The notes: generated by a model from the sequence alone, not told the origin. 64,000 nt of DNA from Parasitella parasitica NRRL 2501 (GCA_025201805.1 MU619252.1:288153-352152), one strand, 5' to 3'. Shown: positions 4,231 through 31,983, counted from the stretch's first letter. A program made the numbers and translations.

Positions 4231-4576
4231 GCATTGTGTACCCTTCCTACACATAAATTAATGTTACATAATACAATTCCCTTTTTTTTTTTCTCGCATA
4301 ATAAAAAACCTCAGTGTATTATTATTTCCAGCGTCCTACCAGATGGATTTTGAAACGAAAAAAATTTATACATCAAAATGCAGACCCTTACAATATCTTA
4401 TAAATCAGCTCACTATTATCACCAGCCCCTGAAGCTCCAACTTTTTTCCTCGCCTAAAACGATGCCGTGTCTTGTATACAGCATAGCAATTGAAGAAAAA
4501 TGGTGTTTACTAATATTTACTACATTGGAATATAATCGCATTATTGTTGAGTTGTAATAGAACAAGGGTATAATAG

Positions 4577-6273
4577 TTATTCTGCCATCCAGTTTTTGAC
4601 AGAGAGACGGTCATCATAGGAAGCTGACATGGATATCTTGCTCATATCATCTCTTGTGGCACAATTGCTCGCCGCTGCGTCTGTATTGCTGCTGTTCTCT
4701 GTGTTACTGTCGGCATTTCGAGTTGTGGGTAAAGAAGCAGAAGATTTCAACGGTTTTTTTGAGCCCTTGGGCTGGGATTGGAGTGTCTGCTGCTGCTGCT
4801 GCTGCCTTTTCTTCTTTTGTTGTCTGGCGTTCTTTGACGACGATGCCACAGATGAAGCCGAAGATTCGAACAAAGATTGAGAGGGTGAAATGGAATAATT
4901 GAAAGGTACTTTGACTATAGGTTGTTGCATATCTTGAAGTGTTTTTTCCAGATTTTGCAGCTTGAGGTTTTCGTATCGAAGGCTAAGATCGACATAATCC
5001 TTGATAGACTTTTTTAAATCTCTGCTTTTTTGCTTTTCAAAGACCTTGATCTCCTTTTTCACTTTATCCTGGTACTCGTCAAAGTCCTTTCTGTTCCTTT
5101 CTAGCTCTTCCGAAGCCTGGCAGAAGCCTGTTAGTATACAAAATCTGGTGCTAATCTTTGATTTTTTTTTATTATTATTATCATTATTATTACCTCAATC
5201 TCTTCCTCGATCACTTGACGAACTTCTGGATGATTGATTCCTAGTCTAAGCTTTAGCTTATCTGATCTGTCTCGTTTCTTGTTGCGGAATTTAAGCTGGT
5301 CAACATAATCCATCAGTTTGACAGTGCGCGAGTTGAGGATGACCTTTAACGGATCAAGCGAGTTTTTGTATTCGATCATCACATCTACAAACTTCATAGA
5401 CTCCTCCTTTCCTTGTCGTGTAAATACAAAGCCTAGTTCGTCCATCAGCAGCCCCATCATTTGCATTTTTCTGTCTAAATTCCTCTGTGAGTCTCTCAGC
5501 TCTAGCTTCAATCCTTGTCCGAGTCTGTATTTGCTTTGCGTTGTTTCGATGATCAAATCTCCCATATGCGTCATTGCATCTCCCAGGCCCTCTCTCGTCT
5601 GGATAAGTTGATTTAACGATTCTGCTATAAATCCATAGTATGACTCTTGTAATAAAATGTAAATCTGGTGCTTGTGAAATACGTCTTGGTCATTTCCTTC
5701 GATAATCTCAGAAGGTTTGAATGATTTGAAGCCTCTGTCTGTATTTGGTTTGATGACTCGGTTGAACCTCAAGAAGGACAATACTCCAGTATTCGAAGGC
5801 CCAACCTCAGTAGGAGACTACATGTGTATATCGTGTTATAATTATGCTGCTTGATTAATTTGCGATAATATACATTTACCATGTCAGCAGACAAGAAATG
5901 TATGAAATCAGCATCTTCTACCAATTCAGAGCGACCCATGATTTTGTCGAAAAAGCGCTCGATTTGAAGTCTCTTTCGCTCCACATAATCCTGGTCATCA
6001 ATAAGTGAGGAGCTGGGCTGATCGGGTAGTGGAGGGAGCACAACTACTGGAAATCTTTTCTTCAATTTATGAAATATCCAACTTATTTGTTGAAAAGTAC
6101 GAAATGAAGTAGGCAGAACCGTTTCAAATTTGCCCTGGAACTGTGATTTGCTGTTTCAGTGACAAGTGAAATAGCGGTTATAGATAATTACTTACATTTC
6201 CTTCCAAAACCAGTTTAAATTGTATTGTATCTGGTGTAGCTGCTGCTTCGGGAACTGTTAAGGTAATATTCAT
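4577..6273 (-). CDS. PX-BAR sorting nexin (Vps5/Snx4-like), multi-exon
   Basis: PX motif RFPVVVLPPLP...VERKRLQIERF...FIHFL, followed by a helical BAR-like region (FEKQKSRDLKKSIKDY). ATG at 6273 with a short first exon. Confidence 0.75.
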
Positions 6274-6798: not shown

Positions 6799-8595
6799 AT
6801 GAGTTTATATGAAATGCATTATGTGTCGAATACGTCCGAGAAAGCTCGAGTCAAAGAGCAGCAAGCAATTATACAGAAAGCCCTGCAAGAGTTATCCATC
6901 AAAAGCAAATTGGAGCAGCAGCAAGAGCATGAAAAATTACTCTCGAAGCACCATTTAAAGTCCTCGCCTGTGAACTTTGATCTATGGCTCCATTCAACCA
7001 AATATAGCGTAGTAACCAACGAGTGCAGACCTTATTCGCCTTACTTCAGCGGAAACGCTGCCATGTCAGATACTGCTTCTACTTGCACTCGTCTAAATAG
7101 ACAAAGAACTCCTTCGATGGTGTCAGCTTCATCATCTTATATGTCAGAAACTACAACAACTACTACATCTAATAGCGTTTGCAGCAGAGAAGACGATGCC
7201 TGTTTTGCCAATCCCACTGAAACAATATCTGAAAGGTATACACATATAGCCACCAGGCACAGCCAATAAACGTCCATCCAGACACATAACTCACGCATTT
7301 ACTTTTTTTTCGCCCATGTAGAGACATGTACGGTTTCAAAAGGCCATTTCAATGGGTCAATAAATCTAAGCTGATAGAGTTTGAACAACGTTATAAATTG
7401 GTACAGAAAAAACAAGCTAGAGGCTGGAAAAAATTGATTGTCAATAGCGATCAGCAATGGCCTGCCTTGTGTCCACAGCGTGAGTACTCCTTGTCATTTT
7501 CTACCCGTAATAAACTGACGAATACCCCTTCTCGACTGGTAGTGAGCCGGTATGTCAGAAAGGGAATTCCGCATGCTATGAGAGCCAAGGTCTGGATGCA
7601 TTACAGCGGCGCAAACAAGAAGCTGCAAGAAAACCCAGGACAATATTTGCGATTACTGGAAACAGATGCAAAAAGTGAGCATGCCGAAGCTATTCAAAAA
7701 GACCTTCACCGTACATTTCCCGATAACTTGCATTTCTCTTGCGATGTGCAACACAAAGATGGGTCTACCACCGTGGCGCCTGAATCGAACCAGAAGATCC
7801 AGCAATTGCGCCGAGTTTTGCTTGCTTTCAGCGTCCATTCGCCTAGTATTGGATACTGTCAGTCTCTCAACTTTTTGGCGGGATTCTTGCTGTTGATTTT
7901 GAGCGAAGAGGAGGCATTTTGGATGCTGGTCACCATTGTGCACGACATATTCCCTCAAAACGTGTTTGACACTACTATGGAAGGCGCTAATATTGAACAG
8001 ACAGTACTCATGATGATGCTGTATGAAAAGATGCCTGGTATCTGGACTAAAATGGCAAGCAAAAAATGCTTCTGGGAATGCGAGCAGAAGGAAGAGTTAC
8101 CCCCTATCACACTCTTGACAAGCCATTGGTTTCTCACTCTCTTCATAAACATTCTGCCTGTGGAAACTGTCTTGCGGATTTGGGATTGTTTCTTTGTGTA
8201 AGTTGAACATATACATCACACTCATATATAACACTGACTCCTGTATTTGCTATTCGTGTAGTGGCGAGGGTTGCAAAGTGCTGTACCAAGTCGCATTGAC
8301 CATCTTCAAACTAAATGAGCAACGTATTCGAAACGCAACAGATTCAACCGAAACATTTCAAATCCTTCAAAACATGCCGAAAAGAATGATTGATTGCGAC
8401 CAATTTATGAAGGTAGGTGTATACTTGGAGAGCGAAAAAAAAATAAAAATAGTGCACTAATATATTTTCTTTGTTTAGTGTGTTTTCTCTCCTGAAAACG
8501 ATGTTGCACAGGTATCTAACAAGGATATCAATAGCAAAAGAGACTTGTTCAAAAGCCGTAAACTACAAAGAAGAATGAGCCGCAATACGAATTAA
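6799..8595 (+). CDS. TBC-domain Rab GTPase-activating protein, multi-exon
   Basis: RKGIPHAMRAKVW, R-finger IQKDLHRTFP, Q-finger GYCQSLNF, EEEAFWML and VLRIWDCFF. The last exon ends at TAA 8593-8595. Confidence 0.92.
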
Positions 8596-25170: not shown

Positions 25171-26277
25171 ATTTTTTTCTTCTTTTTTGTCGAATGTATA
25201 TAGATATAAATGAGAGAAAAAGCAAAAAGCACAAAACGGGCCTATGAAGTTGAATTTATATACTGATTGAGAAGAGGTCCAATTTGCGTAACCATTGAAT
25301 TGCAATACCTGAAAGAAACTTTTTTTTATTCGTTAAATAAGATCGCGAGTTGTGTTTTATACTTTACAAGAATTATGATATTTCATTATGAGAAACTTGA
25401 ATGGCCAAATGCCACAAAATACTTCACCGTGAAAAGTCTCAATCATTTCTAGCACATGCCTTTTTCCTCCTGGTGTTTTTTGAGATTGGACCAAACTAAT
25501 TAGCAATAACGCGGTTTATTGCTGAAGATCCAGGTCATCTAGACTTTTTTTCAGAGAAAATTCGTTGTTTGCTTGTTTTAATTGTCTTTAAACTAAAATA
25601 GGTTTAAATATTACTATACTTCAGATGTTGCAGATTATAGTCTTATTAATTTCATAATTGTTTCGATTTTTACGTGGTTTTAAACATTTCTTAAAGCTGG
25701 GTAATAAAACATTTTCATTATTTTGCTGAAATACCTTCAGAATAATTTCTCATATGCATTGCTCAATTTTAAGATGCTTTTGTATGTCAAAATAAGTCAG
25801 TGAAATGAATCTGCCAATTGATACTTTTAAAAACATCACGTAACCATTTTCTTTTTGAGAATTAGCAAATTGTAAATGTAGAAAATATGCAAACATTAAT
25901 ACTGATGATACTCTGGGGTGGTGCTGTTTTGTGAATAAAATTGGGTTGTTTGGAATTTCTTGTAGTAAAAACAGATCAATCCCGAGACTAATTCAACTGT
26001 TTTGCTGTTGTTTAAGTGTATATTATGTCATATAACTAGGATGGTATGGTATCTCTGCAATAGAATAGCAATTGAGAATATAAGACAGAATTTAGACGTA
26101 AGAAAGTTCGATTCATTTCAAATATACAGTATAATTCAAGATACATCCAAGGCGAGACGTTTCCAGTTTTCAACATCAGATTCAGGAACATGGCTTCTAT
26201 TGGCTCAAAATTCAATCACGTGAGAATAATTAACTAAAGTAACAAAATTTATTTTACGCTCACAATAAATCAAGCAA

Positions 26278-26292
26278 AGCCGGGCTAGCTCA
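26278..26292 (+). repeat. Left target-site duplication (orphan tRNA-Lys nt -1..+14)
   Basis: AGCCGGGCTAGCTCA, identical to 31197-31211. Confidence 0.93.
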
Positions 26293-26566
26293 GTTTAAAG
26301 ATTGTTTTTTTATTTAAAGAATTTAGTGGGCACTCGATATGAGCATAGCCTAATTCCAAGTACTAATGTTGAGGACTAAAAAACCCCTGCAGAGCACTAT
26401 CAGCAAAGAGAAAAAATGGAGTGACAAGTGAATGCAGCACAGTGGGACTAGTGGTGCTACCATTGAGGATCTCGAGGGTCAACCAACGGATGGGAACTTT
26501 GATTTGACTTACCACCGTGGAGCCGCACGTAGAAAGCAACAATGGAGCATGTTCATCTCTGTCAGA

Positions 26567-29500
26567 TCAACCAGGACGGTACCAAAGAGACGCTGGATCT
26601 GGATCCGGAGCGATAATAGCCAGAGGATGCACAAGGCAATCAATGGCGTAGAGCAGATGCATAAGAGCAGACCAGTAGACAGGAGGACCATCAGAGGCTT
26701 TGGTAGGCAGACTGTTGAGAACATGGTCAATAGGATGCATACCAATTGGAGCAGGAGGCAAGGCATCAAGCAACGCAGGATCCAGGGCACGGCAGGACAG
26801 AAAGTGATCACGAGAGATGAAAACACCCTCAGGCGAAACACACGGACACTCTTCACGCATATTGGTGAAACGACCAAGGCGCCAACGAACCAGACGACTA
26901 CGAGCAGTACGACCCAGAGGCAGATACAGTATTGGGTCAGGTCTTGTAGTGTCAGGGCGACAGGCGCGAAGCAAGGTGTAACGGCCAGTGACAGCAGCAG
27001 CAGAGAGTTGACGATCGACTTGATCTTGCCAGTAGTCATCAAAGATGGTACGCAAGCCAGCAGACGAGGGCACAGCAGCAGGCAGAGACGTATACAGAGG
27101 GTTATCACATATAAAACGATCCAACCGTGTATAGTGCAAGTGTTGACGAAGCAGGACCAAAAGACTATCCGGAGGCAGAGTATCAGCGCGCAGAGCAAAA
27201 CGAGTAGCCAGGACATTGTAGCGATGCTTCATACTGGGAAGAGAGGTAATGTGCTTTGCAACATTAACCCAAGTACTACCCACAAACATGCCAACAAGTC
27301 GGTTTTGCAGAGCATCAAGATTGGTGAAATCACGAGCAGAGAGGTGCGAGATGGCCAGACCATACTCCAGCTTGGGACGAATGAAAGTCTTGTACAAGCG
27401 AGAGGAGAGCAGCAGAGAGAAACCAATGCGGTTGACACCCACAGAGTTCAACAGAGCCATAGTCTTGACAGCGCCAGCAGACCTCAGAGACAGAATACCA
27501 GGAGCATACAGACCTTGATACCTGAAAGGCATACCCAGATAGACAAACTCCTCCACAACGGGCAAAGCTTCGCCATACAGAGTGAGAGGAGCACCGGCAA
27601 GAGCAGCAGCAGTACCTAGCACAGCACACTTGGAGGGTTTCCACCGATAGCCAAGAGAGACCGAGTGACCAGCAGCAACATCCAGCATACGCTGCACCTC
27701 AGCTTTGGATCCAAAGACAGCAACATCGTCAGCAAACAGGAGACTATTAATAGCAATAGGAGCATCAGATCCAGGCACAGGCAGCATAGTAGCACCAGTT
27801 GCACCAGAACGCAAAAGACTCGGTAAAGAGTTGATATACAACGAGTACAGATGTGGACTGAGCACTGAGCCCTGCAGAACACCAGTGGTAGGAGAGAAAG
27901 CAGCCGAGTTGTGATTTGCAATCAACACCGAGACAGACACATCGTCAAACATATTGATCAGCAGCCCCAGGACAGCACGAGGAAGAGTAGAAGCAGCCAA
28001 AGCAGACCAGATAACACGTCGATCAACAGTGTCATATGCTGACTTGATATCTAAGAAAGCGACAACAGGACGACGACGGTGCGCAACAAAGTAATCATGC
28101 ATCAAGTCATGCAAGCAGAGGGCTTGGTCCAGGGGACTACGCTGAGGGCGGAAACCACCTTGGGCCACATCAAGAGCAGGGGAGTGTTCATCCAGAGCCG
28201 GCATGAGACAGAACTCAAACAACTTACGCACCACCGAAGTGAGCGATATTGGCCGATAGTTACCAGGATCCGAAGCATCTCCCTTCTTAAAGATGGGAAA
28301 CACCTGAGCTTGACGCCACAAAGCAGGAGTGGAAGACCATTGATAGCACAGAGTGAACAACAGAGACAGTACCGGGGCGACCTCAGAGACCAAAGCCTTG
28401 AGCATCTCAGCTTTGATGTGATCAGGACCAGGCGCTTTATGCGTTGGAAGCCGCTGAATAGAAGAGACAATAGTTTCAACATCAAACAGTGACAAATCCT
28501 CAGGCACACAAAAAGGCAGGGCAGAGTCAAAAGCAGGAGGAGCAGCAGGACGGCTAGCAGCAGCAAGCAGAGAACCATCATACACCGAAGCCAAATGAGA
28601 ACCCATAGTAGAGGCAGAAGCAGCAGGACCATCAGGGTGACTGTACGTAGCAGAGGACTCTTTATTACGCTTGATGCGCTTGATAGCAGCAGTAGCCTTT
28701 GAGAAATCACTCTCGAGAACAGTACAGAACTTTTTCCAAGACCTTCGCTTTGCAGCTTGCACCAGAGACCGAAACTTGCGATGCGCAACTTTGTACAGAT
28801 GCCATTTCTCGACTTTGCCAATCCCAAAGGCATGGCGCCATTGACTGTAGAGACAATCACGGTAAGAGGCAGCATCTTGAATTTCCTGAGTCCAGTATTT
28901 CTTCCAGTGGCCAGGACGACCAGACTTCACACCAATAGAACTATCCAGACAGTCATACAGACATTGATTCAAAGAATCGTTGAGCGCATTTATGTCGGGA
29001 CAAACCCCAGGGGGAGCAGACACCAAACCAGACAGAGTACCAACCAAAGGAGCCACTGAAGATCGAAAGGATTCACGAAGCAAGCCCAAAGGCTGCTCTT
29101 TCGTCAATTTCGAGAGCTTCCACTGACGCCGAGGAGCCAAACCAGTATCACCAGGAGCCACAGGGTCACCAACATCTGCCACATATTCGAAAGTAAGTGT
29201 CATCAGTCGATGGTCAGAGCCAAGAGACAGATCAGACTCAACCACCAGCTGGGCATCCAAGAAAGCAGACTCTCCAATATTTGTCAGAAACAGGTCAATG
29301 ATACTACGCATTTCGTTGCCACCACGAAAAGCAGAGTAGGTGTTCACACCAAAGGCCAAAGACGCATTGAGCACAGACAAGCTATGTTCATCAAACCAAG
29401 GTTTGAGAGCATTTCCACGAGCATTGGAGATAGAATCCCCAGTCAAAGGACCCAACCTAGCATTAAAGTCGCCACACAGAACAGTATCTCGAGTCAGAGG

Positions 29501-29926
29501 CAGAGAGTTAAGAGTCGAGAGCACCCTATCAGATGATAGGGGTGGTGGTAGGTAAACACAATGAACCGTAAGGGTGCCAACCTTGAGGGACAGAGTGTGC
29601 GGGTTGTAGGACGGAAGCTGGGACACAGGAAAAGGACAGAAAGGAGAGACTAAAGCAGAAACACCACCAGAACCACGGTTAAAAGCACCAGGTACTTTCG
29701 AACCATACAAGTGGAACTGGGACCAGTCTATTGGATAGGAGCCAGAGGTGAGCCAAGTTTCAGTAACAAACAGAACATGAGTATTCAAAACATGGGAGAT
29801 AACATCATGAACTGTAGTTTGGGTAAGACCATTAGCATTCCAGAGAGAGAGAGAGACAAAAACCGGGGGGACAAGCACATTACAATTATTTACAGCCAGT
29901 ATAGGGGAATCAGAGATAGAACTCAT
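26567..29926 (-). CDS. LINE ORF2: AP endonuclease + reverse transcriptase + C-terminal Cys/His motif (1119 aa, uninterrupted)
   Basis: APE: LWNANG, VTETW, VYLPP, GDFNA, SIID, SDH. RT: KAPGPD, NYRPISLTS, QGGFR, FLDIKSAYD, GVLQGSVLSP, LLFADD, YLG. C-terminus: ECPC..RDHFLSC. Confidence 0.96.
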   Translation of the reverse strand: MSSISDSPILAVNNCNVLVPPVFVSLSLWNANGLTQTTVHDVISHVLNTHVLFVTETWLTSGSYPIDWSQFHLYGSKVPGAFNRGSGGVSALVSPFCPFPVSQLPSYNPHTLSLKVGTLTVHCVYLPPPLSSDRVLSTLNSLPLTRDTVLCGDFNARLGPLTGDSISNARGNALKPWFDEHSLSVLNASLAFGVNTYSAFRGGNEMRSIIDLFLTNIGESAFLDAQLVVESDLSLGSDHRLMTLTFEYVADVGDPVAPGDTGLAPRRQWKLSKLTKEQPLGLLRESFRSSVAPLVGTLSGLVSAPPGVCPDINALNDSLNQCLYDCLDSSIGVKSGRPGHWKKYWTQEIQDAASYRDCLYSQWRHAFGIGKVEKWHLYKVAHRKFRSLVQAAKRRSWKKFCTVLESDFSKATAAIKRIKRNKESSATYSHPDGPAASASTMGSHLASVYDGSLLAAASRPAAPPAFDSALPFCVPEDLSLFDVETIVSSIQRLPTHKAPGPDHIKAEMLKALVSEVAPVLSLLFTLCYQWSSTPALWRQAQVFPIFKKGDASDPGNYRPISLTSVVRKLFEFCLMPALDEHSPALDVAQGGFRPQRSPLDQALCLHDLMHDYFVAHRRRPVVAFLDIKSAYDTVDRRVIWSALAASTLPRAVLGLLINMFDDVSVSVLIANHNSAAFSPTTGVLQGSVLSPHLYSLYINSLPSLLRSGATGATMLPVPGSDAPIAINSLLFADDVAVFGSKAEVQRMLDVAAGHSVSLGYRWKPSKCAVLGTAAALAGAPLTLYGEALPVVEEFVYLGMPFRYQGLYAPGILSLRSAGAVKTMALLNSVGVNRIGFSLLLSSRLYKTFIRPKLEYGLAISHLSARDFTNLDALQNRLVGMFVGSTWVNVAKHITSLPSMKHRYNVLATRFALRADTLPPDSLLVLLRQHLHYTRLDRFICDNPLYTSLPAAVPSSAGLRTIFDDYWQDQVDRQLSAAAVTGRYTLLRACRPDTTRPDPILYLPLGRTARSRLVRWRLGRFTNMREECPCVSPEGVFISRDHFLSCRALDPALLDALPPAPIGMHPIDHVLNSLPTKASDGPPVYWSALMHLLYAIDCLVHPLAIIAPDPDPASLWYRPG

Positions 29927-31005
29927 TAATTCTCCAGATCAGACATATCACTGTCAGAGGCAACCGGTTTTCCATGGTCCAGCTTGCGACGGAACATAAA
30001 AGCAGCCTTCTTGGGCTCTTTCTCGGCCAGACGGTCCATAGCAGCAGCAACAGCACAAGAGAGATCAGCAGAATCGATCCAGCCTTCCTCAACAAAGTAC
30101 TTACCAACACCACTGACATTAAGAGGACGCAGGAAAGACAGAGTCTGGAGGCAACGGGCTTCAGTNNNNNNNNNNNNNNNNNNNNNNNNNNNNNNNNNNN
30201 NNNNNNNNNNNNNNNNNNNNNNNNNNNNNNNNNNNNNNNNNNNNNNNNNNNNNNNNNNNNNNNNNNNNNNNNNNNNNNNNNNNNNNNNNNNNNNNNNNNN
30301 NNNNNNNNNNNNNNNNNNNNNNNNNNNNNNNNNNNNNNNNNNNNNNNNNNNNNNNNNNNNNNNNNNNNNNNNNNNNNNNNNNNNNNNNNNNNNNNNNNNN
30401 NNNNNNNNNNNNNNNNNNNNNNNNNNNNNNNNNNNNNNNNNNNNNNNNNNNNNNNNNNNNNNNNNNNNNNNNNNNNNNNNNNNNNNNNNNNNNNNNNNNN
30501 NNNNNNNNNNNNNNNNNNNNNNNNNNNNNNNNNNNNNNNNNNNNNNNNNNNNNNNNNNNNNNNNNNNNNNNNNNNNNNNNNNNNNNNNNNNNNNNNNNNN
30601 NNNNNNNNNNNNNNNNNNNNNNNNNNNNNNNNNNNNNNNNNNNNNNNNNNNNNNNNNNNNNNNNNNNNNNNNNNNNNNNNNNNNNNNNNNNNNNNNNNNN
30701 NNNNNNNNNNNNNNNNNNNNNNNNNNNNNNNNNNNNNNNNNNNNNNNNNNNNNNNNNNNNNNNNNNNNNNNNNNNNNNNNNNNNNNNNNNNNNNNNNNNN
30801 NNNNNNNNNNNNNNNNNNNNNNNNNNNNNNNNNNNNNNNNNNNNNNNNNNNNNNNNNNNNNNNNNNNNNNNNNNNNNNNNNNNNNNNNNNNNNNNACCAA
30901 AGTAAGTTGTTGTTGAATTTGTTGCAGTATAACTGGAAACTGATTCATATCCAGGGCTTGTAGGCTGGTGTCCATGGCGGTGAATACTTTTTGAAATTTC
31001 GACAA
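29926..31005 (-). CDS. LINE ORF1 (only the N- and C-terminal ends are visible; the middle is in the gap)
   Basis: The C-terminal part ends ..SDSDMSDLEN-TAA, overlapping the ORF2 ATG. The Q-rich N-terminal part MDTSLQALDMNQFPVILQQIQQQL lies beyond the gap and may belong to a different copy. Confidence 0.6.
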   Translation of the reverse strand: MSKFQKVFTAMDTSLQALDMNQFPVILQQIQQQLTLXXXXXXXXXXXXXXXXXXXXXXXXXXXXXXXXXXXXXXXXXXXXXXXXXXXXXXXXXXXXXXXXXXXXXXXXXXXXXXXXXXXXXXXXXXXXXXXXXXXXXXXXXXXXXXXXXXXXXXXXXXXXXXXXXXXXXXXXXXXXXXXXXXXXXXXXXXXXXXXXXXXXXXXXXXXXXXXXXXXXXXXXXXXXXXXXXXXXXXXXXXXXXXXXXXXXXXXXXXXXXXXXXXXXXXXXXXXXXXXXXXXXTEARCLQTLSFLRPLNVSGVGKYFVEEGWIDSADLSCAVAAAMDRLAEKEPKKAAFMFRRKLDHGKPVASDSDMSDLEN

Positions 31006-31197
31006 TCTGAAAAAGTATGAAGCAGGTGTACGACAAGTCTGAAACTATAACACAATAAACTGTTGATGATAACAAGTATACTGGTGCAATTCCAAGGTGG
31101 TTGGCGTACTGGTTGATAGGTTTTTTACGTTATTTGTTGTTTGGCAAAACTTTTTTCCGAAACTGGAGAAAAAAGTGATGAATAACGGGAAGAGATA

Positions 31198-31270
31198 GCC
31201 GGGCTAGCTCAATCGGTAGAGCGTGAGACTCTTAATCTCAAGGTTGGGGGTTCGACCCCCCCGTTCGGCT
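31198..31270 (+). tRNA. tRNA-Lys, anticodon CTT, intronless
   Basis: GCCGGGC/GTTCGGC acceptor stem, D-arm GCTCAATCGGTAGAGC, anticodon arm TGAGA-CTCTTAA-TCTCA, T-arm GGGGG-TTCGACC-CCCCC with one G-C-rich stem. 73 nt. Confidence 0.96.
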
Positions 31271-31272
31271 AA

Positions 31273-31280
31273 TTTTTTTT
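31273..31280 (+). terminator. RNA polymerase III terminator (T8) of tRNA-Lys
   Basis: Run of 8 T starting 2 nt after the tRNA 3' end. Confidence 0.85.
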
Positions 31281-31983
31281 AAAAAACGAGAATATCGTAG
31301 GACGTTTGAATTTTTTTTTGTTATTATGTCGTGATAATTGTAAATTCAATAAGGCAAATATATGTATCAGTTAAAAGATGAGGTTTATTCAATTTGACAT
31401 AAGATCTACTATTCATATTGTTTTGAGTTGAGTGTCAAAACTAATGTACGACAATTATGTCGTGTGCAGAGATGTGTTAGTTTTGTGCTGCTTTATTAAG
31501 TGTATATAAAATATGAGTAAGAGATGAAAGATCGATCTTTATTCTTTTGTATTCAATTGATATTTATAATAACTAAAAGTGTTACACACAAAGTCTGTGT
31601 GTACCTGACAATTATTCAAGTAGTTTAACTTTAATTCAATTATATAGGTTATGTACATAGGAGGTAAAATAATCATTATTTAGTTACATGGTATTTGGCG
31701 TTCACAAAAATTCGAAGCTACACTTAAAATCTATGTAAACACCATTGTTATAACCAGTGTTTACATGTGACATCACCAGTAATATCACTCAAGAAACTTT
31801 AAAAGATTACAAAGTGGATATCGATACTAATATGTAGAGATTAGGTATAACTTGTATACTCTAATTTTTTTGAAATAGCACCATCAAAGAATTAACAACA
31901 TTATGGATAAAAGTAAAGATTACGTCTAGGATTATTAACTAAATTCTATATCTTGTATTTTGATGATATACAAGTTGATTCTT

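Follow-up and report, generated by a model that had tools for sequence, protein, structure and literature searches.

A LINE inside a tRNA-Lys gene of Parasitella parasitica and a site-specific retrotransposon family that rebuilds its tRNA targets

The element and its tRNA gene

A long interspersed nuclear element (LINE) lies inside a tRNA-Lys(CUU) gene in a 64,000-nucleotide stretch of the Parasitella parasitica NRRL 2501 genome (GCA_025201805.1 MU619252.1:288153-352152; hereafter the window, with positions counted from its first letter). It is very likely a full-length, and probably still active, copy of a family of site-specific retrotransposons without long terminal repeats (non-LTR elements) that encode an apurinic/apyrimidinic endonuclease (APE) and a reverse transcriptase (RT) and that insert inside tRNA genes. 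The element is always antisense to the tRNA, with its 3' end at tRNA base 14 and its 5' end at base 1 (base -1 in the window). Bases 1-14 are present on both sides, so that an intact tRNA gene (A box, B box and terminator) remains next to the element's 5' end, whereas the 14-base stub left next to its 3' end is dead.

The 15-mer AGCCGGGCTAGCTCA is present in exactly two copies in the window, one on each flank of the element (Table 1); 0.01 copies are expected by chance and no shuffled sequence gave two. ARAGORN calls a tRNA-Lys(CTT) at 31197-31271, and the Rfam model a tRNA (65.6 bits) with the limits given in Table 1. In standard numbering the repeat is tRNA base -1 plus bases 1-14, and its last base, A14, is within the A box. 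Unrelated sequence starts directly after the left copy. The first-pass annotation, made from the sequence alone, had read the repeat as bases -1 to +14 of tRNA-Lys(CUU), with an orphan stub on the left and a complete tRNA with eight T on the right, and had placed the element antisense to the tRNA with an intact open reading frame (ORF) for APE and RT. The exact count, the two tRNA calls and the Pfam domains of a minus-strand ORF of 1119 codons all agree with that description.

Table 1. Coordinates of the element, its flanking duplication and the tRNA gene in the window (UTR, untranslated region; Pol III, RNA polymerase III).
Feature	Position	Strand	Description
Left target-site duplication copy	26278..26292	+	Orphan tRNA-Lys(CUU) stub, base -1 to 14, without B box or 3' half; element 3' end adjoins
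3' UTR, 274 nt	26293..26566	-	Ends ...TTTAAAC, without poly(A) tract; AATAAA 16 nt before end
ORF2, 1119 aa	26567..29926	-	Uninterrupted; APE at about residues 25-240; RT 547-800, FADD present; C-terminal CPC-x12-H-x3-C
ORF1, C-terminal 79 codons	29926..30165	-	TAA stop at 29928-29926
Assembly gap, 730 N	30166..30895	.	Middle of ORF1; true length most likely 640 bases
ORF1, N-terminal 26 codons	30896..30975	-	ATG at 30975-30973
5' UTR, 221 nt	30976..31196	-	Starts ATCTCTTCC right beside the tRNA; predicted structured
Right target-site duplication copy	31197..31211	+	Runs into the complete tRNA
Complete tRNA-Lys(CUU) gene	31198..31270	+	73/73 nt identical to the unoccupied copy on contig C9
Eight-T run	31273..31280	+	Usual Pol III terminator, seen in the sequence

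The sense strand of the element is the minus strand of the window. APE followed by RT in one ORF makes it an APE-type non-LTR retrotransposon (LINE). Pfam places PF03372/PF14529 (Exo_endo_phos) at ORF2 residues 29-242 and PF00078 (RVT_1) at 547-800, and ORF2 of the window keeps all residues that are invariant in an alignment of the APE domains of 16 family members. The best match of the family APE profile is the human L1 endonuclease (EN; 7e-8), with TRAS1 EN at 7e-5. L1 EN was reached by the family profile only; as a single sequence, the APE domain had no match in PDB. The RT matches L1 ORF2p (7e-15) and R2 (5e-14) at values too close to discriminate between them. The CPC-x12-H-x3-C motif is visible by eye, and the C-terminal 319 aa of ORF2 gave no Pfam match even at E 10. 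The ORF1 stop and the ORF2 start overlap as TAATG (ORF2 ATG at 29926-29924).

ORF1 is 320 aa long in the copy on contig C173. In AF2 models (pLDDT 75 and 88), a helix of about 60 residues at the N terminus is followed by a linker without order, a domain that resembles an RRM and a C-terminal part made of helices; the best structural matches are RRMs with Z of 5-6 (top 6.0, Prp24 and others). ORF1 gave no significant Pfam match, nothing in Foldseek at E <= 0.001 and no match to L1 ORF1p, and in a whole-model VIA search the matches were filled by coiled coils.

The termini of the element differ (ATCTCTT... and ...TTAAAC) and there are no terminal repeats. The first ~27 nt are the best-conserved part of the 5' UTR across subfamilies and genera (column identity 0.90 vs 0.62-0.70) and the best-conserved non-coding part of the whole element; once a tRNA gene has been rebuilt, they occupy its positions -1 to -27. 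Fold prediction gives z of -3.5 for the 5' UTR and +0.9, nothing unusual, for the 3' UTR. At the other end, a conserved box ATGCTCATATCGAGTGCCCA lies ~50 nt before the end of the 3' UTR, and AATAAA is found 13-17 nt before the element end in every subfamily. An Rfam scan of the UTRs for ribozymes and known RNAs returned the tRNA only.

The middle of ORF1 falls in an assembly gap. A paralogue on contig C173, 97-99% identical on either side, spans this stretch with 640 bases, 0 N and an open 320-codon ORF1. Single read-derived contigs of two public runs, X1, possibly the source sample, and X2, which has another label and comes from a different study, join 30165 to 30896 via 640 letters. With the gap taken as 640 bases, ORF1 of the window is 957 bases long and in frame, and the element has 4814 bases, not 4904. 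The flank to the left is repetitive: numerous loose read-contig ends and very uneven depth occur at 25783-26330, in the 500 bases left of the stub.

Junctions shared by the family

A BLAST search with both element ends, blind to the flanks, over the genome contigs returned 11 distinct 3' ends and 11 distinct 5' ends. At all 11 3' ends, TGAGCTA and seven further bases come next and form the reverse complement of tRNA bases 1-14. All 11 5' ends are preceded, in the same orientation, by such a stub or by a whole tRNA in reverse complement. The 13-base pattern TTAAAC+TGAGCTA has 22 occurrences (0 for the reversed control), and a stub followed by ATCTCTTYC has 13 (0 in the control). Every one of the 22 stubs is a recognisable acceptor-stem/D-arm start, including those of Lys(CUU), Lys(UUU), Phe, Ile and Ala-like tRNAs, and beyond each is unique DNA or the 5' end of another element. 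The insertion point is between tRNA bases 14 and 15 in every copy. Every copy is at one fixed base of a repeated target, which makes the element a sequence-specific LINE.

One 3' UTR type precedes at least seven different stubs. At loci assembled on both sides (the window and contigs C3, C128, C131, C269 and C274), the stub equals bases 1-14 of the local tRNA or of the other stubs of the array. The stub thus follows the local tRNA and not the subfamily, and we conclude that it derives from the target and not from the element. The duplication is 14 bp elsewhere and 15 bp in the window, where base -1 is included; the length of 15 given in the first-pass annotation is correct for this copy, and the rule of the family is 14. 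Its proposal of tRNA targeting is borne out, with a range that takes in many tRNA species and is not restricted to Lys.

Head-to-tail arrays with 14-base stubs as spacers show repeated use of the rebuilt target, as had been proposed. Different subfamilies are mixed within these arrays, which favours serial insertion over tandem duplication. Contig C3 carries a 75-nt 5'-truncated copy. Its reading as a non-autonomous mini-element of ~75 nt was rejected because the same 3' UTR extends further upstream in other copies.

Occupied and unoccupied tRNA genes

The assembly consists of 450 contigs, in which 63 tRNA genes were scored by the Rfam model and their upstream flanks inspected. The 5' end of an element adjoins 16 of the 24 assessable tRNA genes that have GCTCA at bases 10-14 (with T8 and A or G at 9); at one of the 16, it is a 13-nt element remnant. 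None of the 38 tRNA genes with other D-arm sequences is occupied, including those with one-base variants such as GCTTA (Fisher p = 2.7e-9). Insertion therefore depends on GCTCA at bases 10-14. The 7-mer TAGCTCA occurs 8 times in the window (8.7 expected) and its six non-tRNA sites are empty. With the bare 7-mer at chance frequency and these sites empty, more than the 7-mer must be read.

Occupied tRNA-Lys genes are identical to an unoccupied copy over 73 nt. All five tRNA-Phe(GAA) genes that could be detected, using two independent patterns, adjoin an element and remain intact; their 3' flanks, with T runs, differ in all five. In eukaryotes, Phe has no anticodon other than GAA. Since every detected tRNA-Phe gene is a rebuilt one, rebuilt genes should be functional, unless the assembly misses further genes, and we strongly infer from these sequences that the rebuilt tRNA gene is transcribed. 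Insertions seemingly do not kill the tRNA genes that they occupy.

Other repeats were seen at tRNA genes in the same genome. A type-B 5' end lies 19 nt upstream of a tRNA-Gly(UCC) without GCTCA (C9:230459-230500, L148), and just 13 nt of an element 5' end precede a tRNA-Met (C267:1540-1552, L132). A second family, with the 5' end ACCTTTCTTTC...AACCAATTTTTT, is found at the same tRNA site (C27:130591, C162:35495, C23:284116, C131:3343 and C222:12960). Its ORF1 is 35% identical to that of the window family, the same 5' start occurs in Rhizopus stolonifer, and the Parasitella copies are gap-ridden. A repeat of ~330 nt that ends in ...CCCGTAACA is located 9-12 nt upstream of unrelated genes, free of the LINE, for tRNA-Thr-UGU, Gly-UCC and Asn (C38:231183, C136:75317, C179:46485 and others, L166-L171; flanks in L107, L126 and L150). 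It looks like a long terminal repeat from a Ty3-like element whose target is the region upstream of tRNA genes. The left flank of the window element (26240-26277) resembles a degenerate copy of this repeat.

Relatives beyond Parasitella

Relatives of ORF2 with 45-94% identity occur in Mucor, Rhizopus, Cokeromyces and Dichotomocladium. The same junction was identified with two stubs in an array in Rhizopus stolonifer, with four stubs in Dichotomocladium elegans, with three Phe stubs in Mucor velutinosus and with a whole tRNA-Ala(AGC) and two matching stubs in Cokeromyces recurvatus, as well as in one JGI genome and one metagenome contig. Also present are a head-to-tail joint with a 14-base Lys stub in a contig of run X7 and, in a contig of run X2, a window-type 5' end that runs into tRNA-Thr(AGU).

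Runs X7 and X8 lack the window flanks altogether, so they represent other genomes with the element alone in common. In X7, which is labelled as another organism, element pieces within 26377-31160 reach 100% identity at very high depth, without unique flanks. Since Parasitella parasitises other Mucorales by fusion, these pieces may have been transferred horizontally or may come from a mixed culture; the plain alternative is a close relative.

More distant relatives may have other targets. In Logan contig L172 (ORF2 39% identical), ATCCCGTCCGATC stands on both flanks of the element (1-60 and 4540-4579), with a 13-base duplication and in sense orientation. The flanking sequence presumably belongs to a 5S rRNA gene, given its resemblance to the fungal (yeast) 5S sequence; Rfam made no call on the two 30-nt pieces. 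This element may represent a 5S-specific sister lineage. In the Parasitella genome, the Rfam model found no 5S rRNA. The 3' ends of the elements in Logan contigs L175 (4990-5026) and L176 (4930-4963), with ORF2 31-32% identical, directly abut TTAGGG repeats; the two may represent further lineages of the wider clade, with telomere repeats as their specific target. The 3' end of a relative at 35% identity is an A-rich tail. These sequences suggest that the distant relatives form a clade of target-specific elements.

How insertion may work

Target-primed reverse transcription is established for LINEs. In the present family, the APE nick would fall inside the A box, on the sense strand of the tRNA, where A14 meets base 15; the first-pass annotation had deduced a nick at this place, and the fixed junctions fit it. 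The 3' OH at the nick would then prime reverse transcription from the exact 3' end of the RNA, with no poly(A) copied. Given the position of AATAAA, transcripts may end in the downstream stub and so pair with the nicked target, which would explain a base-precise, poly(A)-free junction. The second strand would be cut 14-15 nt away, at the first base of the tRNA, and fill-in would yield the duplication. The rebuilt genes would stay functional, with the conserved 5' terminus of the element in place of the native upstream region. Insertion inside the gene followed by repair through duplication would work only because the tRNA promoter is internal.

The main alternative concerns how the site is found. 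Targeting may be directed by the Pol III complex (TFIIIC/TFIIIB on the tRNA gene), as for TRE5-A or Ty3, and not by an endonuclease that reads DNA. All stubs are true tRNA 5' ends although TAGCTCA is ~4000 times commoner than tRNA genes, so something beyond the 7-mer marks the site, and one relative is apparently in a 5S rRNA gene, another Pol III gene (judged by likeness to the yeast sequence). Direction by the complex is nevertheless unlikely, because insertion is fixed to the base and is absent from the 38 tRNA genes with other D-arms, which are equally bound by TFIIIC; elements tethered by proteins insert at variable distances outside the gene (PMC3706591). A mixed mode, with both sequence and a Pol III factor involved, may also operate. 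It is highly improbable that the element itself brings the 14-base stub along, by 3' transduction of flanking sequence, in place of a target-site duplication: read-through transcripts are plausible with AATAAA so near the end, but the same 3' UTR type occurs with many different stubs, and wherever both sides are assembled the stub matches the tRNA on the opposite side. That an ordinary LINE landed beside a tRNA by chance, for which the first-pass annotation expected family copies at unrelated sites, has next to no probability. The window locus taken by itself is all that speaks for it. The junction census, the occupancy test and the same junction in other genera refute it.

Some observations weigh against tRNA-internal, target-rebuilding insertion as we describe it. 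Genes with GCTCA are not always occupied: one Cys, two Lys(UUU), two Lys(CUU) and three Thr(AGU) genes are free of the element. The arrays could originate in part by unequal recombination. In Rhizopus delemar CH476735 (L157:2420-2450 and 7440-7470), tandem elements are 8-9 bases apart and not 14; the spacer, CAAGAAGC, corresponds in reverse complement to tRNA bases 1-8 instead of 1-14, due either to a different cut site or to a deletion at the junction. No empty-site allele (26292 joined to 31212) was seen in four public runs mapped to 25700-31650, and none of the public RNA runs searched contains the window stretch. Finally, the union of the left junction and the window tRNA in one copy comes from the scaffold, and contig C99 would be an equally good partner.

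This last point allows for a window in which two copies were wrongly joined, with the left flank, stub and 3' part from one and the 5' UTR and tRNA-Lys from another, such as the C99 partner. The gap lies inside the element, and the X1 and X2 contigs end at 31196, the element boundary, and so do not assign the flanks. C99 has the same element start position as the sequence right of the gap, to which it is 100% identical for 300 bases, and it continues into a second tRNA-Lys(CTT) gene, whose 3' flank differs. Such a misjoining is unlikely. The extra A at 31197, right of the element, is also base -1 on the left flank, as expected from a 15-base duplication if the pairing in the window is correct, and this mildly favours the scaffold as built. 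The window also has the only 3' end of its subfamily with a Lys(CUU) stub. Even with a wrong scaffold, the left junction would be paired with a tRNA-Lys(CUU) gene whose first 14 bases are identical, which leaves the finding unaffected. Mis-scaffolding across the gap, a danger raised in the first-pass annotation, is thus answered at the level of the family by C173 and the reads, while at this locus the pairing is that of the scaffold.

Insertion inside the tRNA gene with repair by duplication may be part of a larger picture, which we regard as possible but rather doubtful in its full extent. The sequences would fit an ancient, Mucorales-wide APE LINE lineage that lives as a near-commensal of Pol III genes, with a staggered cut that rebuilds the tRNA and a 5' terminus that replaces the tRNA upstream region. 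The element begins head-to-head with the tRNA, a few bases from where the latter starts, and so may exploit the permanently open, TFIIIC-bound gene as a promoter upstream of itself or as an insulator. All Parasitella tRNA-Phe genes would then be expressed from LINE-derived upstream sequence, and sister lineages would have switched to 5S rRNA genes and telomere repeats.

Similar elements

LINEs of the NeSL clade occur in tRNA genes: NeSL-1_TV in tRNA-Pro, LIN15_SM in tRNA-Arg and LIN25_SM in tRNA-Glu (Kojima and Jurka 2015, PMC4640811). Like the window element, they are non-LTR elements with a fixed site inside tRNA genes and live in a multicopy RNA gene. NeSL elements have a restriction-like endonuclease, located C-terminal to the RT, no APE, and one tRNA species each, whereas the window element has APE at the N terminus and uses many tRNA species with GCTCA in common at bases 10-14. 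The gene is rebuilt through the long duplication; we found no statement to this effect on NeSL insertions.

The Tx1 clade is similar in its APE-type machinery and base-precise insertion into small multicopy RNA genes. Its targets include U2 snRNA (Keno), 5S rRNA (Mutsu) and a tRNA-Leu spacer (Dewa), and Tx1L is also a member (PMC4494074, PMC3706591). The wider relatives of the window element include a likely 5S lineage and two possible telomere-repeat lineages. The Tx1 clade is described from animals, with no member reported inside a tRNA body; the comparison with the window element is one of features.

TRE5/TRE3 of Dictyostelium and Ty3 of yeast integrate outside the tRNA gene, at a distance, via Pol III factors (PMC5391098, PMC5006619, PMC3706591). 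TRE5-A/TRE3 and Ty3 share with the window element the use of tRNA genes as safe havens, repeated hits at one gene and preservation of that gene. The window element differs in that it is inside the coding sequence, at a fixed base and dependent on D-arm sequence. Dada DNA transposons have a fixed site in tRNA or snRNA genes, a DDE transposase and 6-7-bp duplications (PMC3706591, PMC8869645); they split the target gene, which the window element rebuilds. Prokaryotic integrative elements in tRNA genes achieve the same outcome, a complete gene, by site-specific recombinases at the 3' half, with the restoring sequence borne by the element; in the window LINE it is a target-site duplication of the 5' end.

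In Grem-LINE1 of Mucoromycotina, which is pericentromeric, ORF1 contains zinc knuckles (PF00098/PF16588) and ORF2 a zf-RVT domain (PF13966; 10.1101/706580). Grem-LINE1 resembles the window element as a Mucorales LINE with two ORFs, APE and RT. Pfam found neither the zinc knuckles nor zf-RVT in the window element, and tRNA is unmentioned in the Grem-LINE1 papers (10.1101/706580). In the literature searched, to which Repbase and subscription journals did not belong, no tRNA-internal Mucorales LINE and no APE-type LINE inside tRNA bodies is described.

Conclusions

Site-specific LINEs, and tRNA genes as a target, are already known. What appears to be undescribed is an APE LINE that enters the tRNA body at a D-arm motif common to many isoacceptors and rebuilds the gene by its own duplication. 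It adds a third lifestyle at tRNA genes to two known ones: the known site-specific LINEs split the gene that they target, the known tRNA-associated retroelements land beside the gene and leave it whole, and the window family enters the gene and repairs it. An APE nuclease that combines a long, defined target with base-precise insertion at a seemingly harmless site in many copies could serve as a tool, being of a type considered for targeted gene delivery (PMC3706591). In assemblies of Mucorales, many of the breaks between contigs and of the tandem arrays of LINEs are due to this family. The relatives that are apparently on 5S rRNA genes and telomere repeats would permit the study of target switching within one clade. 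With about two-thirds of the suitable tRNA genes and every detected tRNA-Phe gene occupied, the genome offers a natural test of how important the upstream region is for Pol III genes in early-diverging fungi.

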